This document shows, in pieces, positions 5,883 through 60,161 of a stretch of 64,000 nt of DNA. Under the pieces are notes generated by a model. It was not told the DNA's origin. It did no database searches and saw nothing but the letters and a program-made list of their open reading frames with translations. The DNA lies in sequence record PQ657772.1; one strand, 5' to 3'. A program made the position numbers and the translations under genes. Within the stretch, counting starts at the first letter, position 1. Each line of letters opens with the position of its first letter.

Positions 5883-6311
5883 TTAGTTAATAATAAAGGT
5901 AACTTCAGGATTCATTTCTGAAACTGCATTTCTCTTACTTCTATTCCATAGTACTCTATTGTTATATAATGAAGAATCACAAATTATAAGTAAGCAATTC
6001 CTTAATCTACTTACAGTACTTTGATTACTTAAATCAGTTTCTGTAACAAAAAATACATTATCAGGAACTTCTACAGGAATTGATTTATCAAAGAAGAAAA
6101 CTACAATAGGTCTGTTTGTATGAACTAAATTAATAAAGTCTAAAATACTGTTATAAAATTCAGTTCCTTTGTTTAAACTTAATGGATCTTTGATTCTCTT
6201 CAAATAGGTCTGAACCAAATTATGATCGCTTTTGATTTGATACTCAAAATATTCTTTGAATAACATTTGTGTTAATTCAGATGTATTGGATATTTTCGTT
6301 GTGTTACTCAT
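5883..6311 (-). CDS. hypothetical protein
   Basis: ORF directly downstream of ncRNA-like element A. Confidence 0.65.
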   Translation of the reverse strand: MSNTTKISNTSELTQMLFKEYFEYQIKSDHNLVQTYLKRIKDPLSLNKGTEFYNSILDFINLVHTNRPIVVFFFDKSIPVEVPDNVFFVTETDLSNQSTVSRLRNCLLIICDSSLYNNRVLWNRSKRNAVSEMNPEVTFIIN

Positions 6312-6397: not shown

Positions 6398-6966
6398 TTG
6401 ACGGGATTTGTTGAGGACTATTTCATCCCCCCGCAGGGGAATGAAGGTAATAAAAAAGAGACAATTAAGTCTCTCTTGACGATGATGGCATCGGATATTA
6501 TCGAATTGCGAATTTCTCAAATTTTGGACGGATCTTTCCTGTACCAAAATTTAGAGAGCGAAAGCGGGTTGCTCGGTTTCTCTCTATCGCAGTCATATGC
6601 AACGGTCGCTGGTCTTTTCATCAACAGCACTCAGTACTAAACTCTATTCGATCAAAGTAGTACCTGTTCTCAAATTTTGGACGCAACTTTCTTGTAAAAT
6701 CGCGTCCACAATCCTTGAACTCCCTTAGCAAATTCGTAAGGTGCGAACCTTATACATCTATCTAGGAACTCTCTGTGTGCTTATTGGAGTTCTTTATACA
6801 GCCGTGTCGCCGTGATTCGTGGTCTTATCTCGTGTTTGTTTGATTGCCAGTACTCTAACAGGTTTCTTTTGCTGTTCGCTACAACGGTAAAGCTCATCTA
6901 TCCTTTACATTTTCAAGAGAAGTAGGTTCTCATTATCCATTTTTCAATGTCCGTTGTCATTTTACA
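6398..6966 (-). ncRNA. putative large structured ncRNA, copy A (family unassigned)
   Basis: GC-elevated intergenic block sharing at least 8 collinear conserved blocks with 58749-59216; compensatory changes; G.U pairs only work on the minus strand; promoter at 6973-7000. Confidence 0.7.
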
Positions 6967-6972
6967 ATATAC

Positions 6973-7000
6973 ATTATATCACTAGGATGTATTATGTCCC
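6973..7000 (-). promoter_or_regulatory. promoter GGGACA-N13-TGA-TATAAT driving element A
   Basis: Read directly; same architecture at six other sites. Confidence 0.8.
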
Positions 7001-7001
7001 G

Positions 7002-7400
7002 TTACATGTATACCTTTTTCAAATCCTTGGAACAACGGTCAAAAATTGTGTTGATGAATTCGACATCCTCTTTGATATTGGAGTCTATAGCATCATTCTC
7101 GTTTCTTGTTGTGTTCCTGTATTTGTGTTCAGGGTGATTGTATACCACCTTGACTACATTATTTAGGTCTACAAAAAATGACGATTTTTGCGTATAGGAA
7201 GCCTGAAGCTTGATGAGTTTACCATCGTTTTGTAGATTAGTCTTGTGAATTAGTTCTTCAATACCATCTAAATGGCTATAGCTATCCTGTTCTTTGACGA
7301 ATGTAACAGTTACCAGTACTGACTTCTCATCTCCAAAGTCAGAGATATTTTTAACAGCACTGATGATTTCTAAGTTTGAAAAATCTAATTCTTTTAGCAT
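7002..7400 (-). CDS. hypothetical protein
   Basis: Likely start MLKEL at 7400 (TAATG overlap). Confidence 0.65.
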   Translation of the reverse strand: MLKELDFSNLEIISAVKNISDFGDEKSVLVTVTFVKEQDSYSHLDGIEELIHKTNLQNDGKLIKLQASYTQKSSFFVDLNNVVKVVYNHPEHKYRNTTRNENDAIDSNIKEDVEFINTIFDRCSKDLKKVYM

Positions 7401-18992: not shown

Positions 18993-19015
18993 AAAAAAGC
19001 ACCCATTGGGTGCTT
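18993..19015 (-). terminator. intrinsic terminator
   Basis: AAGCACCCA-A-TGGGTGCTT hairpin plus T run. Confidence 0.75.
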
Positions 19016-19019
19016 GTGT

Positions 19020-19490
19020 TTAAAAGTCTTTATTTTTATATAAAATTCGTTGGTTATTTGAACCACGAAATGGTAATGTTAAATTCTTTTCTTCTGAAAC
19101 AAATTTACCATCAACTAATACATCTAAGTACTGAAGAATGTCTTTAGCATGATTATTCATAATCTCTTCTAAAGTATATCCACTCCAGCACCAAATAGTT
19201 TTATTGGGATAAGTCTCTTTTACAATCTTACATAGTTCTAAAATTGTTTCTATGTTCTTTTTCATTAGAGGATCTCCACCAAGGAGGGATAATCCACTAA
19301 CGTAAGGCTTACTGAGTTCAGCTAAAATTATATCAATTGTATCAGTACTGAACTCTTGCCCACTTCTATAATCCCATGCTTCTTCGTTAAAGCATCCGTC
19401 ACACCCATGACTGCACCCACTAACAAAAAGGGAGCATCTTACTCCCTCCCCATTAATAAGGTCGTCTTTAATTATCGTCTGGTAATTCAT
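19020..19490 (-). CDS. nrdG: anaerobic ribonucleotide reductase activase (radical SAM)
   Basis: NGEGVRCSLFVSGCSHGCDGCFN (CxxxCxxC), GGDPL, FRGSNNQR. Confidence 0.97.
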   Translation of the reverse strand: MNYQTIIKDDLINGEGVRCSLFVSGCSHGCDGCFNEEAWDYRSGQEFSTDTIDIILAELSKPYVSGLSLLGGDPLMKKNIETILELCKIVKETYPNKTIWCWSGYTLEEIMNNHAKDILQYLDVLVDGKFVSEEKNLTLPFRGSNNQRILYKNKDF

Positions 19491-19794
19491 CTAATATTGC
19501 ACTCACTATCTCAACGAGAACATCACCATGACATGATTTCGGTTTACAGAAACAGCCAAGACGTTTCCCTGCTAACTCAAGTAAATCATCAATCTTAACT
19601 TCTCCATTAGAAATACGCTCAATAATGTATTCTCTGAACTTTTCGATTGATTCTTCCCTTGTAGCAACAATGAACTCGGCTTTGGTCTGTTTATCACTGA
19701 TATGGGTAAATGGGTTTCCCCATTTAGACCCACGCCCGATATACACATCATACGGTTCTTTATATTTGTTAACCACAATTGGCTTTAAATCCAT
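19468..19794 (-). CDS. DUF4326-like protein
   Basis: YDVYIGRGSKWGNPF...L.GKRLGCFCKPKSCHGDVL. Confidence 0.85.
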   Translation of the reverse strand: MDLKPIVVNKYKEPYDVYIGRGSKWGNPFTHISDKQTKAEFIVATREESIEKFREYIIERISNGEVKIDDLLELAGKRLGCFCKPKSCHGDVLVEIVSAILDELPDDN

Positions 19795-19802
19795 AATGTA
19801 CC

Positions 19803-21608
19803 TTATTTGTGTTGTATACGCTCACAACATTCTTGTTGTTTACCTTTGTTGAATCCACGAGACGATGGGTTCCCCAAATATCCAGAAACACGACGAATCA
19901 CTGAGATTGTCTTCTCATTGCGATTATCACATACTGGACAATGAAAACCGTGTTTATCTACACTGAACTCACCTTTATACCCACACTCGTAACACTGGTC
20001 AATTGGCTGGTTGATGCCAAAATATGGAATCTTTGTGTAAGCGTAATTGACTAAAGTCTCAAGTGCTTGAATATTGTTACTTAGGTTGGGTGATTCAACA
20101 TAACTGATGTTTCCACCATTACTGAGGTAAGCAAAGCCCTCTTCGTAACTCCACTTATCAAATGGTGAACTTTCTACCCATACTGGTTGATGGAAGGAAT
20201 TTGTGATGTAATCACGTTTTAGTACTGAAGGGTATTTAGATTCGATGCAACGTGCAAATTTGTAGCAAAGTGACTCTGCTGGGGTTCCATATAGACTAAA
20301 AGCTATATTACTCTCTTTTTTGAACTCATCGCATTTTACTTTCATATAATTCAGTACTGACATACAGAACTCCTTACTAATAGAACCAGTCAGAATTTCT
20401 GAACATTCAACTAAACCAACGTAACCAATACTAATACTAGCATATCCGTTATAAAATAGCTTGTCAATCGTTTCTTCTGCCCCTAAACGTGAAAGTGCAC
20501 CTTCCATGAACAAAATCGGATTCTGCTTCGCTTTTGTGCCTTTTAAACGCTCTACGCGGTTCATCTGAGCACGATATGCAATATTCATATGCTCGTCTAT
20601 TTTATCAAAAAACTCTCCATCTGAGGCACTTTCAAGAGCAATTAGAGGTAAATTGATAGAAACCACGCCTAAGTTGAAACGACCGTTATATTGCTCATTT
20701 CCATTGGCATCTTCCCATTTTCCTAAAAATGAACGACAGCCCATCGGAGTTACTGCTGTACTGCTACTTCCTGTAACTTTGTGATTTAACGGCACAGAAA
20801 CGAAGTCTGGGTAGATTCTCTTCGATGCACAACGCATTGCCAACTGTTTCATGTCATAGTTGCAATCATCGCTATTCATGTTGATTCCGTCCTGTAAAAA
20901 GAAAATTACTTTAGGAAACACAGGAGTAATCTTATCTTTACCTAAACCATTCTCATGTACTTTTAAGTACTGTTCAGTGATTAATTTACCAAATTTTGAA
21001 GTATTCAGTCCCAAACTAAGAGAAATGAATGCTGCTTGACCATTTGTACTAATCATTGAATTTGTCTGGTAAAGTAAGGTTTGACACCCATCATAGACTT
21101 CTTTTCGTAATTCTTCCTCAATGTATTCAGTACTGAGATTATATGCCTTTTGCTTCGCTAATAGCTTATCCCACGACTTTTGGACGTAAGGTTCAAGACC
21201 AACGTCGATATGAGCCAACGATTGACCACCGTACTGGGAACTAGCAACAGCTTGTACAATTTGTGTCAGTACTGTACATGCTACACTAAAACTCTTTGGT
21301 TCTTCAATTTTGGCACAACCAATGGTAAATCCATTTTTTAGCATATCTGGGTAGTTAACTAAGCAACAGTTAGTTAATGGGCTGATATAGTAGTCTAAAT
21401 CATGAATATGACCATAACCATCATTATGCCACTGCATTAGCTCCTTTGGAATAACATCTTGTGAATAATGCTTAGATAGAATACCAGCAAGTAAATCCCT
21501 GTGTGTATTGACGCATTTCGCATCTTTGTTTGCATTTTCATTTGTAAGATCAGTATTGCTCTGATTTAGGAAATTTGTTACGTCAGTATATAATTTATCT
21601 AATTGCAT
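19803..21608 (-). CDS. nrdD: class III (anaerobic) ribonucleoside-triphosphate reductase, no ATP cone
   Basis: HIHDLDY, NCCLV, MGCRSFL, GRFNLGVVSINLP, YGTPAESL, CxxC..CxxC, RRVSGYL glycyl-radical motif; likely start MQLD. Confidence 0.97.
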   Translation of the reverse strand: MQLDKLYTDVTNFLNQSNTDLTNENANKDAKCVNTHRDLLAGILSKHYSQDVIPKELMQWHNDGYGHIHDLDYYISPLTNCCLVNYPDMLKNGFTIGCAKIEEPKSFSVACTVLTQIVQAVASSQYGGQSLAHIDVGLEPYVQKSWDKLLAKQKAYNLSTEYIEEELRKEVYDGCQTLLYQTNSMISTNGQAAFISLSLGLNTSKFGKLITEQYLKVHENGLGKDKITPVFPKVIFFLQDGINMNSDDCNYDMKQLAMRCASKRIYPDFVSVPLNHKVTGSSSTAVTPMGCRSFLGKWEDANGNEQYNGRFNLGVVSINLPLIALESASDGEFFDKIDEHMNIAYRAQMNRVERLKGTKAKQNPILFMEGALSRLGAEETIDKLFYNGYASISIGYVGLVECSEILTGSISKEFCMSVLNYMKVKCDEFKKESNIAFSLYGTPAESLCYKFARCIESKYPSVLKRDYITNSFHQPVWVESSPFDKWSYEEGFAYLSNGGNISYVESPNLSNNIQALETLVNYAYTKIPYFGINQPIDQCYECGYKGEFSVDKHGFHCPVCDNRNEKTISVIRRVSGYLGNPSSRGFNKGKQQECCERIQHK

Positions 21609-21669
21609 TTTACTTTCCTTGTATTTTGAAATCATCTGGGGGTGAAGTTATTTAACATCACCAGACACC

Positions 21670-21711
21670 ATTATAGCGTCAGAACAGGGTATTTCTCTTG
21701 ATCTATATCAA
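21670..21711 (-). promoter_or_regulatory. FNR-dependent class II promoter for nrdD-DUF4326-nrdG
   Basis: TTGAT-ATAG-ATCAA at 21698-21711, 22 nt upstream of TATAAT (21670-21675), i.e. centred at -41.5; no separate -35. Confidence 0.8.
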
Positions 21712-21744: not shown

Positions 21745-21770
21745 AGAAAAAGCACCTCTAGGGTGCTTTT
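21745..21770 (-). terminator. intrinsic terminator insulating the nrdD promoter
   Basis: AAAAGCACC-CTAGA-GGTGCTTTT followed by T-rich tail. Confidence 0.8.
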
Positions 21771-21885
21771 AAAGTACTGCTAATATAAAAACTGCCCAAA
21801 TTAGCAGTACTACATTGGTTGGAGCGGCAAAAAACATATATGCAGCAATTGCACTGCATCCGATTACAAGTTTAGCTAGTCTCAT
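21769..21885 (-). CDS. small membrane protein (38 aa)
   Basis: Manual translation MRLAKLVIGCSAIAAYMFFAAPTNVVLLIWAVFILAVL*. Confidence 0.55.
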   Translation of the reverse strand: MRLAKLVIGCSAIAAYMFFAAPTNVVLLIWAVFILAVL

Positions 21886-49306: not shown

Positions 49307-49596
49307 TTTATTACCTCTATATCTACATCTGTGCCATAGTAGGAAACGTAACCATTATCCGACTTACATTGAATTGATAACTCAGATTCATAGTATGTTA
49401 CTTTGATCACTGTTAGTACTTTTTCTTCAATTTCTCCCGTTAAATAATCCATTTCACGAACACGAACATTGGTTCCTTTTGGGAGTTCTTGTGCAATTTT
49501 ATTAACAAGTTCAAAAGCAGCTTCTTCAAGTGTGTGCAACAATTGCAATCTATCTTGGATATTCATATTATTTCCACCAAGTTGTATCTCGACCAC
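49303..49596 (-). CDS. ~90-aa helix+beta family protein
   Basis: LPKGTNVRV; likely start MNIQD. Confidence 0.6.
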   Translation of the reverse strand: MVEIQLGGNNMNIQDRLQLLHTLEEAAFELVNKIAQELPKGTNVRVREMDYLTGEIEEKVLTVIKVTYYESELSIQCKSDNGYVSYYGTDVDIEVIK

Positions 49597-50257
49597 CAGA
49601 CAAAGATTCGTTGTACTGATGCCTGAAATTAGTATTTGGATTATTTGTCATTGTACTAATAAAATCAAATTTAACATTCTCTTGAATGTAATTAATAACA
49701 TTATCTTTAAATTTAATAGTACTGAAGTCTAAATCTAAATGTTCATACAATACAGGATGACAAAACTCATGTGTACGCAATGATGGCATGGTATCCTTAA
49801 TGTATTGCACAGTGTTAATCATTGCATTGTACTCAGGCATAGCACGCATCATCATTAGCTGAAAGTGTTCTTCCTCTGACATTGACTCATCCAAATCAAT
49901 AACGACTTCATCATTTTTAGAGTCATATACTTTAATGGAACTCTTTGTTGGATCAAGCATAGCCCACTCTGGATACAGGCATGTTTTCCAAAAAGGATTA
50001 TTGCACTGAAACATACTAATGAGATTTTGATTTTTATCAAAAATAGCAAATCCAAGATCCGAACTTGGCTGTACTTCACATACACAAATATCATAAGGGG
50101 AGTCTTCAGTACTGAATGAACCAACTACATTTGATATATGTGAATATGGAGTTTCTCTTGATTTTAATTCAAAGGCTCTCTCCATACGATTAACCTGTGG
50201 TTGTAATGTAATTACACCCCTCAGTACATATAAAATTCTATCTAAATCTTTAATCAA
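49568..50257 (-). CDS. hypothetical protein (EE.FQL motif family)
   Basis: MSEEEHFQLMMM. Confidence 0.7.
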   Translation of the reverse strand: MIKDLDRILYVLRGVITLQPQVNRMERAFELKSRETPYSHISNVVGSFSTEDSPYDICVCEVQPSSDLGFAIFDKNQNLISMFQCNNPFWKTCLYPEWAMLDPTKSSIKVYDSKNDEVVIDLDESMSEEEHFQLMMMRAMPEYNAMINTVQYIKDTMPSLRTHEFCHPVLYEHLDLDFSTIKFKDNVINYIQENVKFDFISTMTNNPNTNFRHQYNESLSGGRDTTWWK

Positions 50258-58748: not shown

Positions 58749-59280
58749 TTGACGGGGTTTGCTTGAGCATATTTCATCCCCCCGCAGGGGAAAGAACAAA
58801 AAAAGTTTGACGCTGGTGGCCTTCACATAGTTCATATCACGAATTCTCTTACGAGGCGAAAGCGGGTTGCTCTGTTTCTCTCTATCGCGGTTCTTGTAGC
58901 AACGGTCGTCGGTCTTAAACATCCCGACACATAATACAAATACCATATGACCAGTACTTGTATTTGATTTCACGAATTTTGGACGCAACTATATTGTATA
59001 AATTACGACCGCAAATTTCTCATGAAATCTCCCTTAGATAATTGGTAAGGTGCGATCCTTATATGTCTATCGAGGAACTCTCTTTATCCTATTGGAGTTC
59101 TTTATACAGCCGCATTGCCGTGAGTGGTTCAAACTATGCCATCATCTAACGGGTTTCATTTGCTGTTCGTACTGAAAGGACTACTCATCTACCCTCTACT
59201 TTTCGAGTGGATTAGGCTTTAATCATTTCCATATGGAACCTTTCAGGATTAAAAAAAGGCGACAACATATTCTGCTGTCA
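58749..59280 (-). ncRNA. putative large structured ncRNA, copy B (homologue of 6398-6966)
   Basis: Same conserved blocks in the same order; covariation with copy A; promoter at 59287-59314. Confidence 0.7.
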
Positions 59281-59282
59281 CC
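59251..59282 (-). terminator. terminator-like hairpin at the 5' end of element B
   Basis: GGTGACAGCA-GAATA-TGTTGTCGCC followed by T7. Confidence 0.65.
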
Positions 59283-59286
59283 TTAC

Positions 59287-59314
59287 ATTATATCATAAAC
59301 TTATGGTCTGTCTC
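59287..59314 (-). promoter_or_regulatory. promoter GAGACA-N13-TGA-TATAAT upstream of element B
   Basis: Read directly. Confidence 0.75.
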
Positions 59315-60161
59315 AGTTGTATTCTGTTTTTTCAGTGAAATTAGTTAAGATATCTGCACTTAAGCTTCTCATAACCTCAATCTTACTTGGCATGAACCTG
59401 TGCTTGTTTTTTACATACAACTCATCATCTTCAATGAAAGATGTGAACATGAATACCATATCTTCACGTGGAATTGAGAGAATATTACAGTTTTCATTTT
59501 CAGCAACAGGGGAATCATTGTAGTACTTAGAGAATGCAGTACTTTGACGACCGATTATGATAGAATTTCGGATTAGAAAATTACTACAGTACTGAAAATC
59601 TTTGTAGTACTTGTCAAGGATATATGGCATTATCGCTTCTTTCACTTCTTCATATCCATTGGTACTATCAATTTCAGTACAATAATCTTCTCGGTCTTTT
59701 TTCCCTCGATGATTATCAAACTCGTACTCAAAGAATAAATTTTCATTTAATGAATCATTTGAACCAACTGATCCACTATAGTATGATTTTCTATCATTCA
59801 TTCGATCATCCGGGCATGATGCATACATAGAAATGTCATGTGTTGACGTACCGATATAAATTTTCTTAGTAATGTGATTGTACGCGATGTAATCATAATC
59901 TTGTACTCCAGTTAGCATTAACTGGAACATCAATTCATCAGGAACATCAATTAACGGGTACTCAAACTTCGAATATCTACTACGACAGAAATTCTTTTCA
60001 AATGCTCGATATGCGATGAAATCTTTTAGGTTTGTAATAGATTCATGCTCATGTGTACTACTGGTGCGTACATTGACATTAGTAGACGAGCAATACCCTT
60101 CAGATTCTTCTGCGTAGTCATAATAACCCTTACTGTAGTCAACGATTAGATAAAGTTTCAT
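59313..60161 (-). CDS. hypothetical protein (FQL motif family)
   Basis: PDELMFQLMLTG. Confidence 0.75.
   Translation of the reverse strand: MKLYLIVDYSKGYYDYAEESEGYCSSTNVNVRTSSTHEHESITNLKDFIAYRAFEKNFCRSRYSKFEYPLIDVPDELMFQLMLTGVQDYDYIAYNHITKKIYIGTSTHDISMYASCPDDRMNDRKSYYSGSVGSNDSLNENLFFEYEFDNHRGKKDREDYCTEIDSTNGYEEVKEAIMPYILDKYYKDFQYCSNFLIRNSIIIGRQSTAFSKYYNDSPVAENENCNILSIPREDMVFMFTSFIEDDELYVKNKHRFMPSKIEVMRSLSADILTNFTEKTEYN

Follow-up and report, generated by a model that had tools for sequence, protein, structure and literature searches.

The anaerobic ribonucleotide reductase operon (nrdDG) of Escherichia phage EC.P1, an Asteriusvirus-like virulent jumbo phage with a genome of 356 kb (PQ657772), is preceded by a perfect consensus box for the oxygen regulator FNR, which stands at a class II distance from a consensus sigma-70 -10 hexamer and retains its half-sites in all 13 Rak2-like jumbo-phage promoters aligned. 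The best explanation of this arrangement, and one that we hold to be likely, is a class II-type sigma-70 promoter that depends on FNR. Judging from sequence, the phage probably times nrdDG expression by the oxygen status of its host.

The nrdDG operon and its surroundings

The window analysed here is a stretch of 64,000 nucleotides, whose plus strand corresponds to record positions 248001..312000 of PQ657772 and whose genes lie nearly all on the minus strand. The features of the nrdD region are collected in Table 1. The 4 kb around the promoter match EC.P1 at 100% identity and some 33 further Asteriusvirus jumbo phages, infecting E. coli and Salmonella, at 88-99%.

Table 1. Features of the nrdDG operon and its promoter region in the window, in order of transcription.
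Feature	Position	Strand	Basis or remark
38-aa hydrophobic small ORF, final gene of the upstream unit	21769..21885	-	Translation; G17_00428 homologue; conserved (alignment A1)
Upstream intrinsic terminator, 9-bp stem and T run	21748..21770	-	Terminator scan; ARNOLD annotation at the same place in G17
Perfect palindromic FNR consensus box TTGAT-N4-ATCAA, TTGATATAGATCAA	21698..21711	.	10/10 consensus match
Consensus sigma-70 -10 hexamer TATAAT (promoter P1)	21670..21675	-	22 nt after box
Predicted P1 transcription start	21662..21663	-	Placed from the -10 position; puts box centre at -41.5
Inverted repeat GGTGA..TCACC	21641..21662	-	Present by reading; fold test
TAAATAA(n)TTCACC, probable late-type promoter P2, predicted start near 21643	21641..21654	-	Invariant in 13/13
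nrdD Shine-Dalgarno AAGGAAAG	21613..21620	-	Sequence reading
nrdD, class III anaerobic ribonucleotide reductase, 601 aa	19803..21608	-	Pfam NRDD E = 3.5e-167
DUF4326 gene within operon	19468..19794	-	Pfam PF14216, E = 3.7e-24
nrdG, radical-SAM activase	19020..19490	-	Pfam Fer4_12 E = 2.9e-53 and Radical_SAM
Operon-ending intrinsic terminator	18997..19015	-	Terminator scan; annotated in G17

The nrdD product includes a glycyl-radical domain (Pfam Gly_radical E = 3.6e-23). Its start at 21608 is the one annotated in the EC.P1 record and is preceded by a Shine-Dalgarno sequence, while the longest open reading frame begins at 21635. Around the Shine-Dalgarno (21613-21624; columns 120-126 of promoter alignment A3), ACA-N-GGA occurs in 12 of the 13 aligned phages, RaK2 being different; the region reads AUACAAGGA in Asteriusvirus and resembles a CsrA binding core, which may simply reflect the Shine-Dalgarno itself. 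Phages A4 (L005 4110-4472) and Yen9-04 (L007 3168-3530) have within their nrdD-nrdG operons a gene for a 120-aa 'pyruvate formate-lyase', which looks like a glycyl-radical spare part of the GrcA/YfiD type and is not present in the operon of the window.

Upstream of the operon, the stop codon of a 38-aa ORF abuts an intrinsic terminator. This ORF is shorter than the length cut-off of the ORF list and is annotated in G17, though unannotated in EC.P1; two 'terminator-like' hairpins (21859..21840 and 21808..21791) fall within it. For the terminator itself, which the first-pass annotation had drawn at 21745-21770, the scan gives 21770..21748 and a homologue is annotated in G17. It insulates the nrdD promoter from transcription coming from upstream. 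The GCACC..GGTGC stem and T run are retained in the Asteriusvirus and RaK2 lineages and in those of L009, L012 and L038; the five Eneladus-type phages lack the upstream terminator.

An FNR box at a class II position

The first-pass annotation had described a perfect TTGAT-N4-ATCAA palindrome exactly 22 nt upstream of TATAAT, which would centre it at -41.5, at a promoter with no other -35. Direct reading of the minus strand bears out the palindrome, and the geometry agrees relative to a predicted start placed 7 nt past the -10 hexamer (21663/21662). The -35 position of P1 is occupied by AGAGAA, a match to TTGACA at one of six positions; the minus strand has no TGn extension of this -10, and a sigma-70 scan with a cut-off of at least 9 of 12 matches called no promoter at P1. 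Consensus sequence, spacing near -41.5, a poor or absent -35 and purifying selection on the site, four marks of a class II FNR promoter, are all found at the phage promoter.

The window contains two perfect FNR boxes against 0.43 expected from shuffled sequences, and one-mismatch boxes occur at chance level (nine found, 9.0 expected). Because a perfect box alone is not rare, the significance of the nrdD box rests on its position and conservation. The other perfect consensus, at 50027-50040, lies within a 229-aa ORF (49568..50257, minus strand), is also present in phage TH47 and is probably due to chance.

Conservation of the box across Rak2-like jumbo phages

Phage nrdD loci were gathered from annotated phage records and from IMG/VR, with a single-protein search giving 2 loci and an alignment query 48. 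Thirteen Rak2-like nrdD promoters were aligned (A3): those of the Escherichia phages EC.P1, G17/121Q, A4 and JNE01, of RaK2 (Klebsiella), GAP32 (Cronobacter), CBB (Pectobacterium), BF (Serratia) and fHe-Yen9-04 (Yersinia), and of four metagenomic relatives. The identities of the sampled loci were verified. All 13 carry TTGAT-N4-(A/G)TCAA at 76-90 nt before the nrdD ATG, which covers six host genera as well as the metagenomic relatives. Of the ten half-site positions only one varies, between A and G, while the N4 spacer occurs in seven forms (ATAG, TTAG, TCAG, CCAG, CTAG, TTAT and TTAA). In L012, L038, GAP32, CBB, BF, L015 and Yen9-04 the non-motif promoter columns are 34-44% identical to EC.P1, and yet the half-sites match it at 9-10 of 10 positions. 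The first-pass annotation had proposed conservation in relatives as a check, and the outcome supports its reading, since the half-sites persist where the spacer and flanks diverge. Such a pattern is that expected of a protein-binding site under selection.

Elsewhere the same loci contain no perfect box and nine one-mismatch boxes in 56 kb of background, so that boxes with at most one mismatch are expected at 0.02 per 130 nt, the length of one upstream region. A functionless chance palindrome would be compatible with the frequency of perfect boxes in the window, where the second one lies inside a gene, but hardly with a box kept in 13 of 13 diverged promoters around a variable N4 and within near-random flanks; we regard this explanation as next to negligible.

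The -10 hexamer is conserved over a narrower range. In the four Asteriusvirus lineages GCTATAATG at the -10 of P1 is invariant; RaK2, L009, L012 and L038 have TGATATAAT at 22-23 nt after the box, and altogether TATAAT or TGATATAAT stands at this distance in 8 of the 13 sequences. The Eneladus-type relatives GAP32, CBB, BF, Yen9-04 and L015 have a degenerate hexamer in this place, 23 nt past the box (TATTTT, TATTAT, TTGAAT, TTTTTT). In some relatives the -10 of the nrdD promoter is of the extended type, for which no activator should be needed.

A separate conserved palindrome, TACCCC-N7-GGGGTA, was observed between the FNR box and TAAATAA in the same five relatives (L010, L011, L014, L015 and L047, corresponding to GAP32, CBB, BF, a metagenomic relative and Yen9-04), while at this position Asteriusvirus retains only ATACCC. 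Its halves resemble NarL heptamers (TACCCCT), and it could be the site of a second regulator or a weak hairpin.

Host FNR and host RNA polymerase

A palindrome of this kind shows only that a dimer binds, and most genes of these phages are without known function, which leaves a place for some other dimer, be it a phage regulator or host CRP. However, the half-sites are exactly those of the FNR consensus, being TTGA in all 13 promoters and GTGA, the CRP type, in none, and E. coli FNR, used as a tblastn query on 50,697 phage records, yielded no FNR/CRP homologue except for one fragment in a Listeria phage. The hosts, Enterobacterales and Aeromonas, are facultative anaerobes with a conserved FNR. 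Moreover, the host counterpart of the gene under control is itself an FNR target (PMC4009431). We therefore consider a reader other than FNR very unlikely and, given that no phage-encoded FNR was found, host FNR the likely reader of the phage nrdD box. Activation of host nrdDG by FNR, which the first-pass annotation had taken as established for enterobacteria, is in agreement with the literature (PMC2892513, PMC4009431).

Jumbo phages of this group lack an RNA polymerase of their own and use the host polymerase together with phage sigma factors (PMC7824862, PMC11895373), and RpoD-like early promoters have been described for CBB (PMC5259590). On the gene strand of the window, TGnTATAAT occurs in 17 copies, nine of them intergenic against 1.4 expected, and promoters of the TTGACA-17-TATAAT type are found in several intergenic regions; sigma-70 promoters are therefore in use. 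Among them the nrdD promoter stands out in having neither a -35 nor a TG extension. Factors of the AsiA type, which remodel sigma-70, occur in some group 2 jumbo phages (PMC7824862); were the polymerase modified by the phage, FNR might act only in the first minutes of infection, or class II activation might be lost altogether. Neither control of a phage nrdD by FNR nor the presence of FNR boxes in these phages turned up in full-text literature searches, and the Asteriusvirus genome papers on fEgEco12 and Sharanji do not discuss promoters.

A second, phage-type promoter in the nrdD leader

Downstream of P1, the motif TAAATAA lies exactly 43 nt from the FNR box in all 13 promoters, with TAAATA invariant. 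A composite scan of IMG/VR for box-N43-TAAATAA gave mostly chance matches, and among the matches listed 4 of 115 adjoin nrdD, which makes the scan unsuitable as an unbiased census. The hexamer TAAATA is strongly avoided, with 22 copies in the window against 113 +/- 10 expected and 203 copies in the full TH47 genome (L186-L192) against 623 expected, whereas six control hexamers of similar composition reach 0.75-1.03 of expectation in TH47. Intergenic DNA makes up 10% of the TH47 genome and holds 37% of its TAAATA copies; measured to the following same-strand ATG, the distances are concentrated at 20-59 nt and peak at 30-39 nt. Intergenic copies on the minus strand of the window were noted at 5885, 9143, 18982, 35494 and 21654. 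Intergenic TAAATA stands 33-39 nt before several genes of the window, including an 898-aa gene just after nrdG whose homologues are annotated as minor tail protein.

For CBB and GAP32, ATAAATA upstream of structural genes has been interpreted as a T4-like late promoter, alongside a gp55-like sigma factor (Buttimer et al., PMC5259590), and phages of this group are reported to have a gp55-like sigma together with an orthologue of gp33 (PMC5259590, PMC7824862). The T4 late motif itself, TATAAATA, has zero copies in the window. As with late promoters, the nrdD element is a TATAAATA-like motif 30-50 nt before a gene and is avoided elsewhere. On these grounds TAAATAA at nrdD is probably a phage late-type promoter, P2, resembling that of T4, and the operon probably has tandem promoters, one for FNR with sigma-70 and one of phage type. 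Matches to the 14-mer TAAATAA(n)TTCACC elsewhere in the window are at chance level (11 found against 9.2 expected with two mismatches). On inspection, an NrdR box, a CRP site, ArcA repeats, a DnaA box, an IHF site and a leader peptide were each considered for this 14-mer, and none fits.

The fixed position of TAAATAA also bears on where FNR would act. With a TAAATA transcript starting 6 nt downstream, at A21643, the box would be centred at about -61.5, a class I position, and FNR could be acting mainly in a class I-like manner on this downstream promoter, with TATAAT secondary or lineage-specific. The 43-nt spacing holds in 13 of 13 promoters, while the -10 varies by 1 nt in position and, in five lineages, is degenerate; the record of Yersinia phage Yen9-03 annotates a -35 TTGAAT and a -10 GTAAATAAT here, and the upstream FNR site used by E. 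coli nrdDG lies near -64.5. On the other hand, TAAATA is without the -7 T that sigma-70 requires, AATAAT being offered by only 4 of the 13 sequences, and it behaves as a phage-specific signal (PMC5259590). There is no known precedent for FNR activating a gp55-type holoenzyme, and the perfect TATAAT is conserved within Asteriusvirus. We consider a mainly class I-like action unlikely. Since the invariant distance is that from box to TAAATAA (43 nt) and not that from box to -10 (22/23 nt), FNR may nevertheless work at the downstream promoter, either instead or in addition. For EC.P1 the best reading of the sequence is class II sigma-70 activation, because its TATAAT is perfect and conserved in the genus.

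A hairpin in the 5' UTR had been suggested in the first-pass annotation as an additional layer of control. The inverted repeat does exist, but a conserved regulatory role is not supported. Three of the four Asteriusvirus sequences fold at -9 to -11 kcal/mol; A4 gives -2.2 kcal/mol, and A4 and the other lineages range from about 0 to -4; the fold energy of EC.P1 is unremarkable (z = -0.46). Over the 13 relatives no covariation was detected (pairing in 55% of cells, a level matched by 255 of 500 shuffles), and Rfam searches of the leader and whole window gave no match at the gathering score and otherwise only sub-threshold noise. The hairpin was accordingly rejected as a conserved regulator.

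Proposed mechanism

From the sequence elements, their geometry and conservation and the absence of a phage FNR, we infer FNR binding, activation, start sites and timing as follows. When oxygen is lacking, pre-existing host FNR would keep its [4Fe-4S] cluster, dimerize and bind the box, and the bound dimer would recruit host sigma-70 RNA polymerase to a perfect -10 without a -35, leading to transcription through nrdD, the DUF4326 gene and nrdG up to the operon-ending terminator. In air, FNR would be monomeric and P1 weak, the upstream terminator would stop read-through, and the oxygen-labile glycyl-radical enzyme would then not be produced early in infection. P2, 21 nt downstream of the -10, would probably add later transcription that is independent of FNR.

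That host FNR drives phage nrdDG, as the first-pass annotation had supposed, gains strong comparative support from the conserved half-sites, the lack of a phage FNR and the use of sigma-70 promoters. The operon is probably not strictly anaerobic-only, because of the probable second promoter and the extended -10 in several relatives. Given the probable late-type TAAATA signal, oxygen control is probably confined to sigma-70 transcription. FNR activity is set post-translationally, and for this reason FNR should keep working after host transcription has been shut off.

A second intergenic FNR-type box

Ahead of a 78-aa gene with the annotation 'immunity to superinfection', another intergenic FNR-type box was observed, 17-19 nt from a downstream TAAATA. 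It was located in TH47 (L188:36965-36978, record 136765), at about 47.2-47.8 kb of the EC.P1 record, in JNE01 (L194) and in vB_Ec-M-J (L195). TH47 (TTGATCTAGATCAA) and JNE01 (TTGATCTATATCAA, in a region of 74% identity) have a perfect box, that of vB_Ec-M-J has one mismatch, and the 121Q clade is without this region. Altogether TH47 has five perfect FNR boxes, two of which are intergenic by inspection.

The second box hints at a small FNR regulon in these phages. A fuller version, in which nrdDG and the imm-like gene form this regulon and the nrdD box is spaced for both the sigma-70 (-41.5) and the TAAATA (about -61.5) promoters, is a speculation to which we give little weight; if true, the host oxygen sensor would also activate a polymerase programmed by a phage sigma factor. 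The distance of 17-19 nt before TAAATA is more typical of repression, and this would fit FNR binding at nrdD as a repressor, for instance delaying or limiting nrdDG or blocking read-through. To repress an anaerobic enzyme under anoxia is physiologically senseless, however, and -41.5 spacing without a -35 is an activation geometry, which makes a repressing role at nrdD highly improbable.

Two further noncoding regions of the window, at 6640-7005 and 58985-59315 on the minus strand, are paralogous. They measure 330-365 nt, each follows an extended -10 promoter TGATATAATG, and they share 78% column identity with long invariant blocks. Neither contains a long ORF, a tRNA or an Rfam match in the window search at gathering score, and a relaxed Rfam search of the 6600-7050 copy (E<=1) likewise gave no match. 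They may represent a phage noncoding RNA family.

nrdD promoters in other phage lineages

The box is unevenly distributed among other phages that carry nrdD, whose product is encoded in 2,406 phage records. The intergenic region upstream of nrdD has no FNR box in 37 T4-like loci, in rV5 or in phiTE; a few T4-like loci have one-mismatch boxes 108-213 nt upstream with no -10 at the right distance. A T5-like phage has no box upstream of nrdD and instead a full TTGACA-17-TATAAT promoter. By contrast, phi92-like phages have TTGACTAAGATCAA upstream of nrdD, followed after 22 nt by TAAAAT, and a 78%-identical relative has a terminator, then TTGATCCTGAACAA and, 21 nt further, TGGTAAAAT. In the Aeromonas phages phiA019 and L069, TTGATTTG(G/A)GTCAA precedes TGATAAAAT by 21 nt, and the flanks differ. 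The arrangement recurs in at least three phage lineages and is absent from T4-like and T5-like phages that infect the same hosts, a pattern suggestive of a lineage-specific adaptive choice.

The phi92-like phage PATM (L062 600-703) is a less clear case. Its FNR-like box overlaps the stop codon of the upstream gene, and between the putative promoter and the nrdD ATG there is a hairpin resembling a terminator; the layout could be attenuator-like, or the box there could be without function.

Biological significance

Virulent phages are usually pictured with a fixed programme, whereas here a lytic enterobacterial phage may read the oxygen state of its host, offering a testable case, drawn from sequence alone, of a phage using a pre-existing host sensor. 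This bears on phage replication in the anoxic gut, the home of these coliphages, some of which have been proposed for therapy; in that environment the dNTP supply must come from the class III reductase. The mechanism suggested is that of a textbook class II FNR promoter and is not very surprising to a specialist, but the case is clean, conserved and testable.

Comparison with known systems

Class II FNR promoters of E. coli with a site at -41.5 include nirB, narG, dmsA and the FF-melR model. Like these, the phage promoter has a consensus TTGAT-N4-ATCAA box 22 nt before a good -10 and no usable -35; unlike these, it is located on a virulent jumbo-phage genome, with TAAATAA at a fixed 43 nt and a terminator just upstream.

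In the E. coli nrdDG promoter, FNR sites are situated at -64.5 and -33.5. Boston & Atlung 2003 and Roca et al. 2008, as cited in PMC4009431 and PMC2892513, reportedly place this promoter under FNR. Phage and host share the same genes, nrdD and nrdG, and the same proposed regulator. The host promoter has two imperfect boxes, TTGAGCTACATCAA and TTGATGCAAAGCAC, 31 bp apart and 235 and 204 nt before the ATG, as well as NrdR boxes and a long leader (PMC2892513). The phage promoter has one perfect box 89 nt before the ATG, and inspection revealed in it no NrdR-like box or palindrome, in contrast to the host combination of two FNR sites with tandem NrdR boxes. As the host promoter is built differently in box number, distance and NrdR boxes, the phage promoter, to judge by its sequence, is independent wiring and not a captured copy.

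TAAATA, 46 nt before the nrdD ATG and strongly avoided genome-wide, resembles the T4-type late promoter and the ATAAATA of CBB and GAP32. It differs from the T4 late promoter in matching only 6 of its 8 positions and in having a conserved TTCACC, which accompanies the motif at no other site in the window.

The closest biological precedent is the control of cyanophage genes by host PhoBR, which concerns pstS in P-SSM2 and genes of S-PM2d and is supported by EMSA and RNA-seq (PMC10976474). Some of the host-factor boxes predicted in cyanophages failed to bind or to respond (PMC10976474). The two cases differ in regulator (FNR versus PhoB), signal (oxygen versus phosphate) and hosts, and the phage nrdD case is predicted from sequence. 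In both, a lytic phage sets the box of a host environmental regulator before a metabolic gene, and EC.P1 would add an oxygen example to the phosphate precedent.
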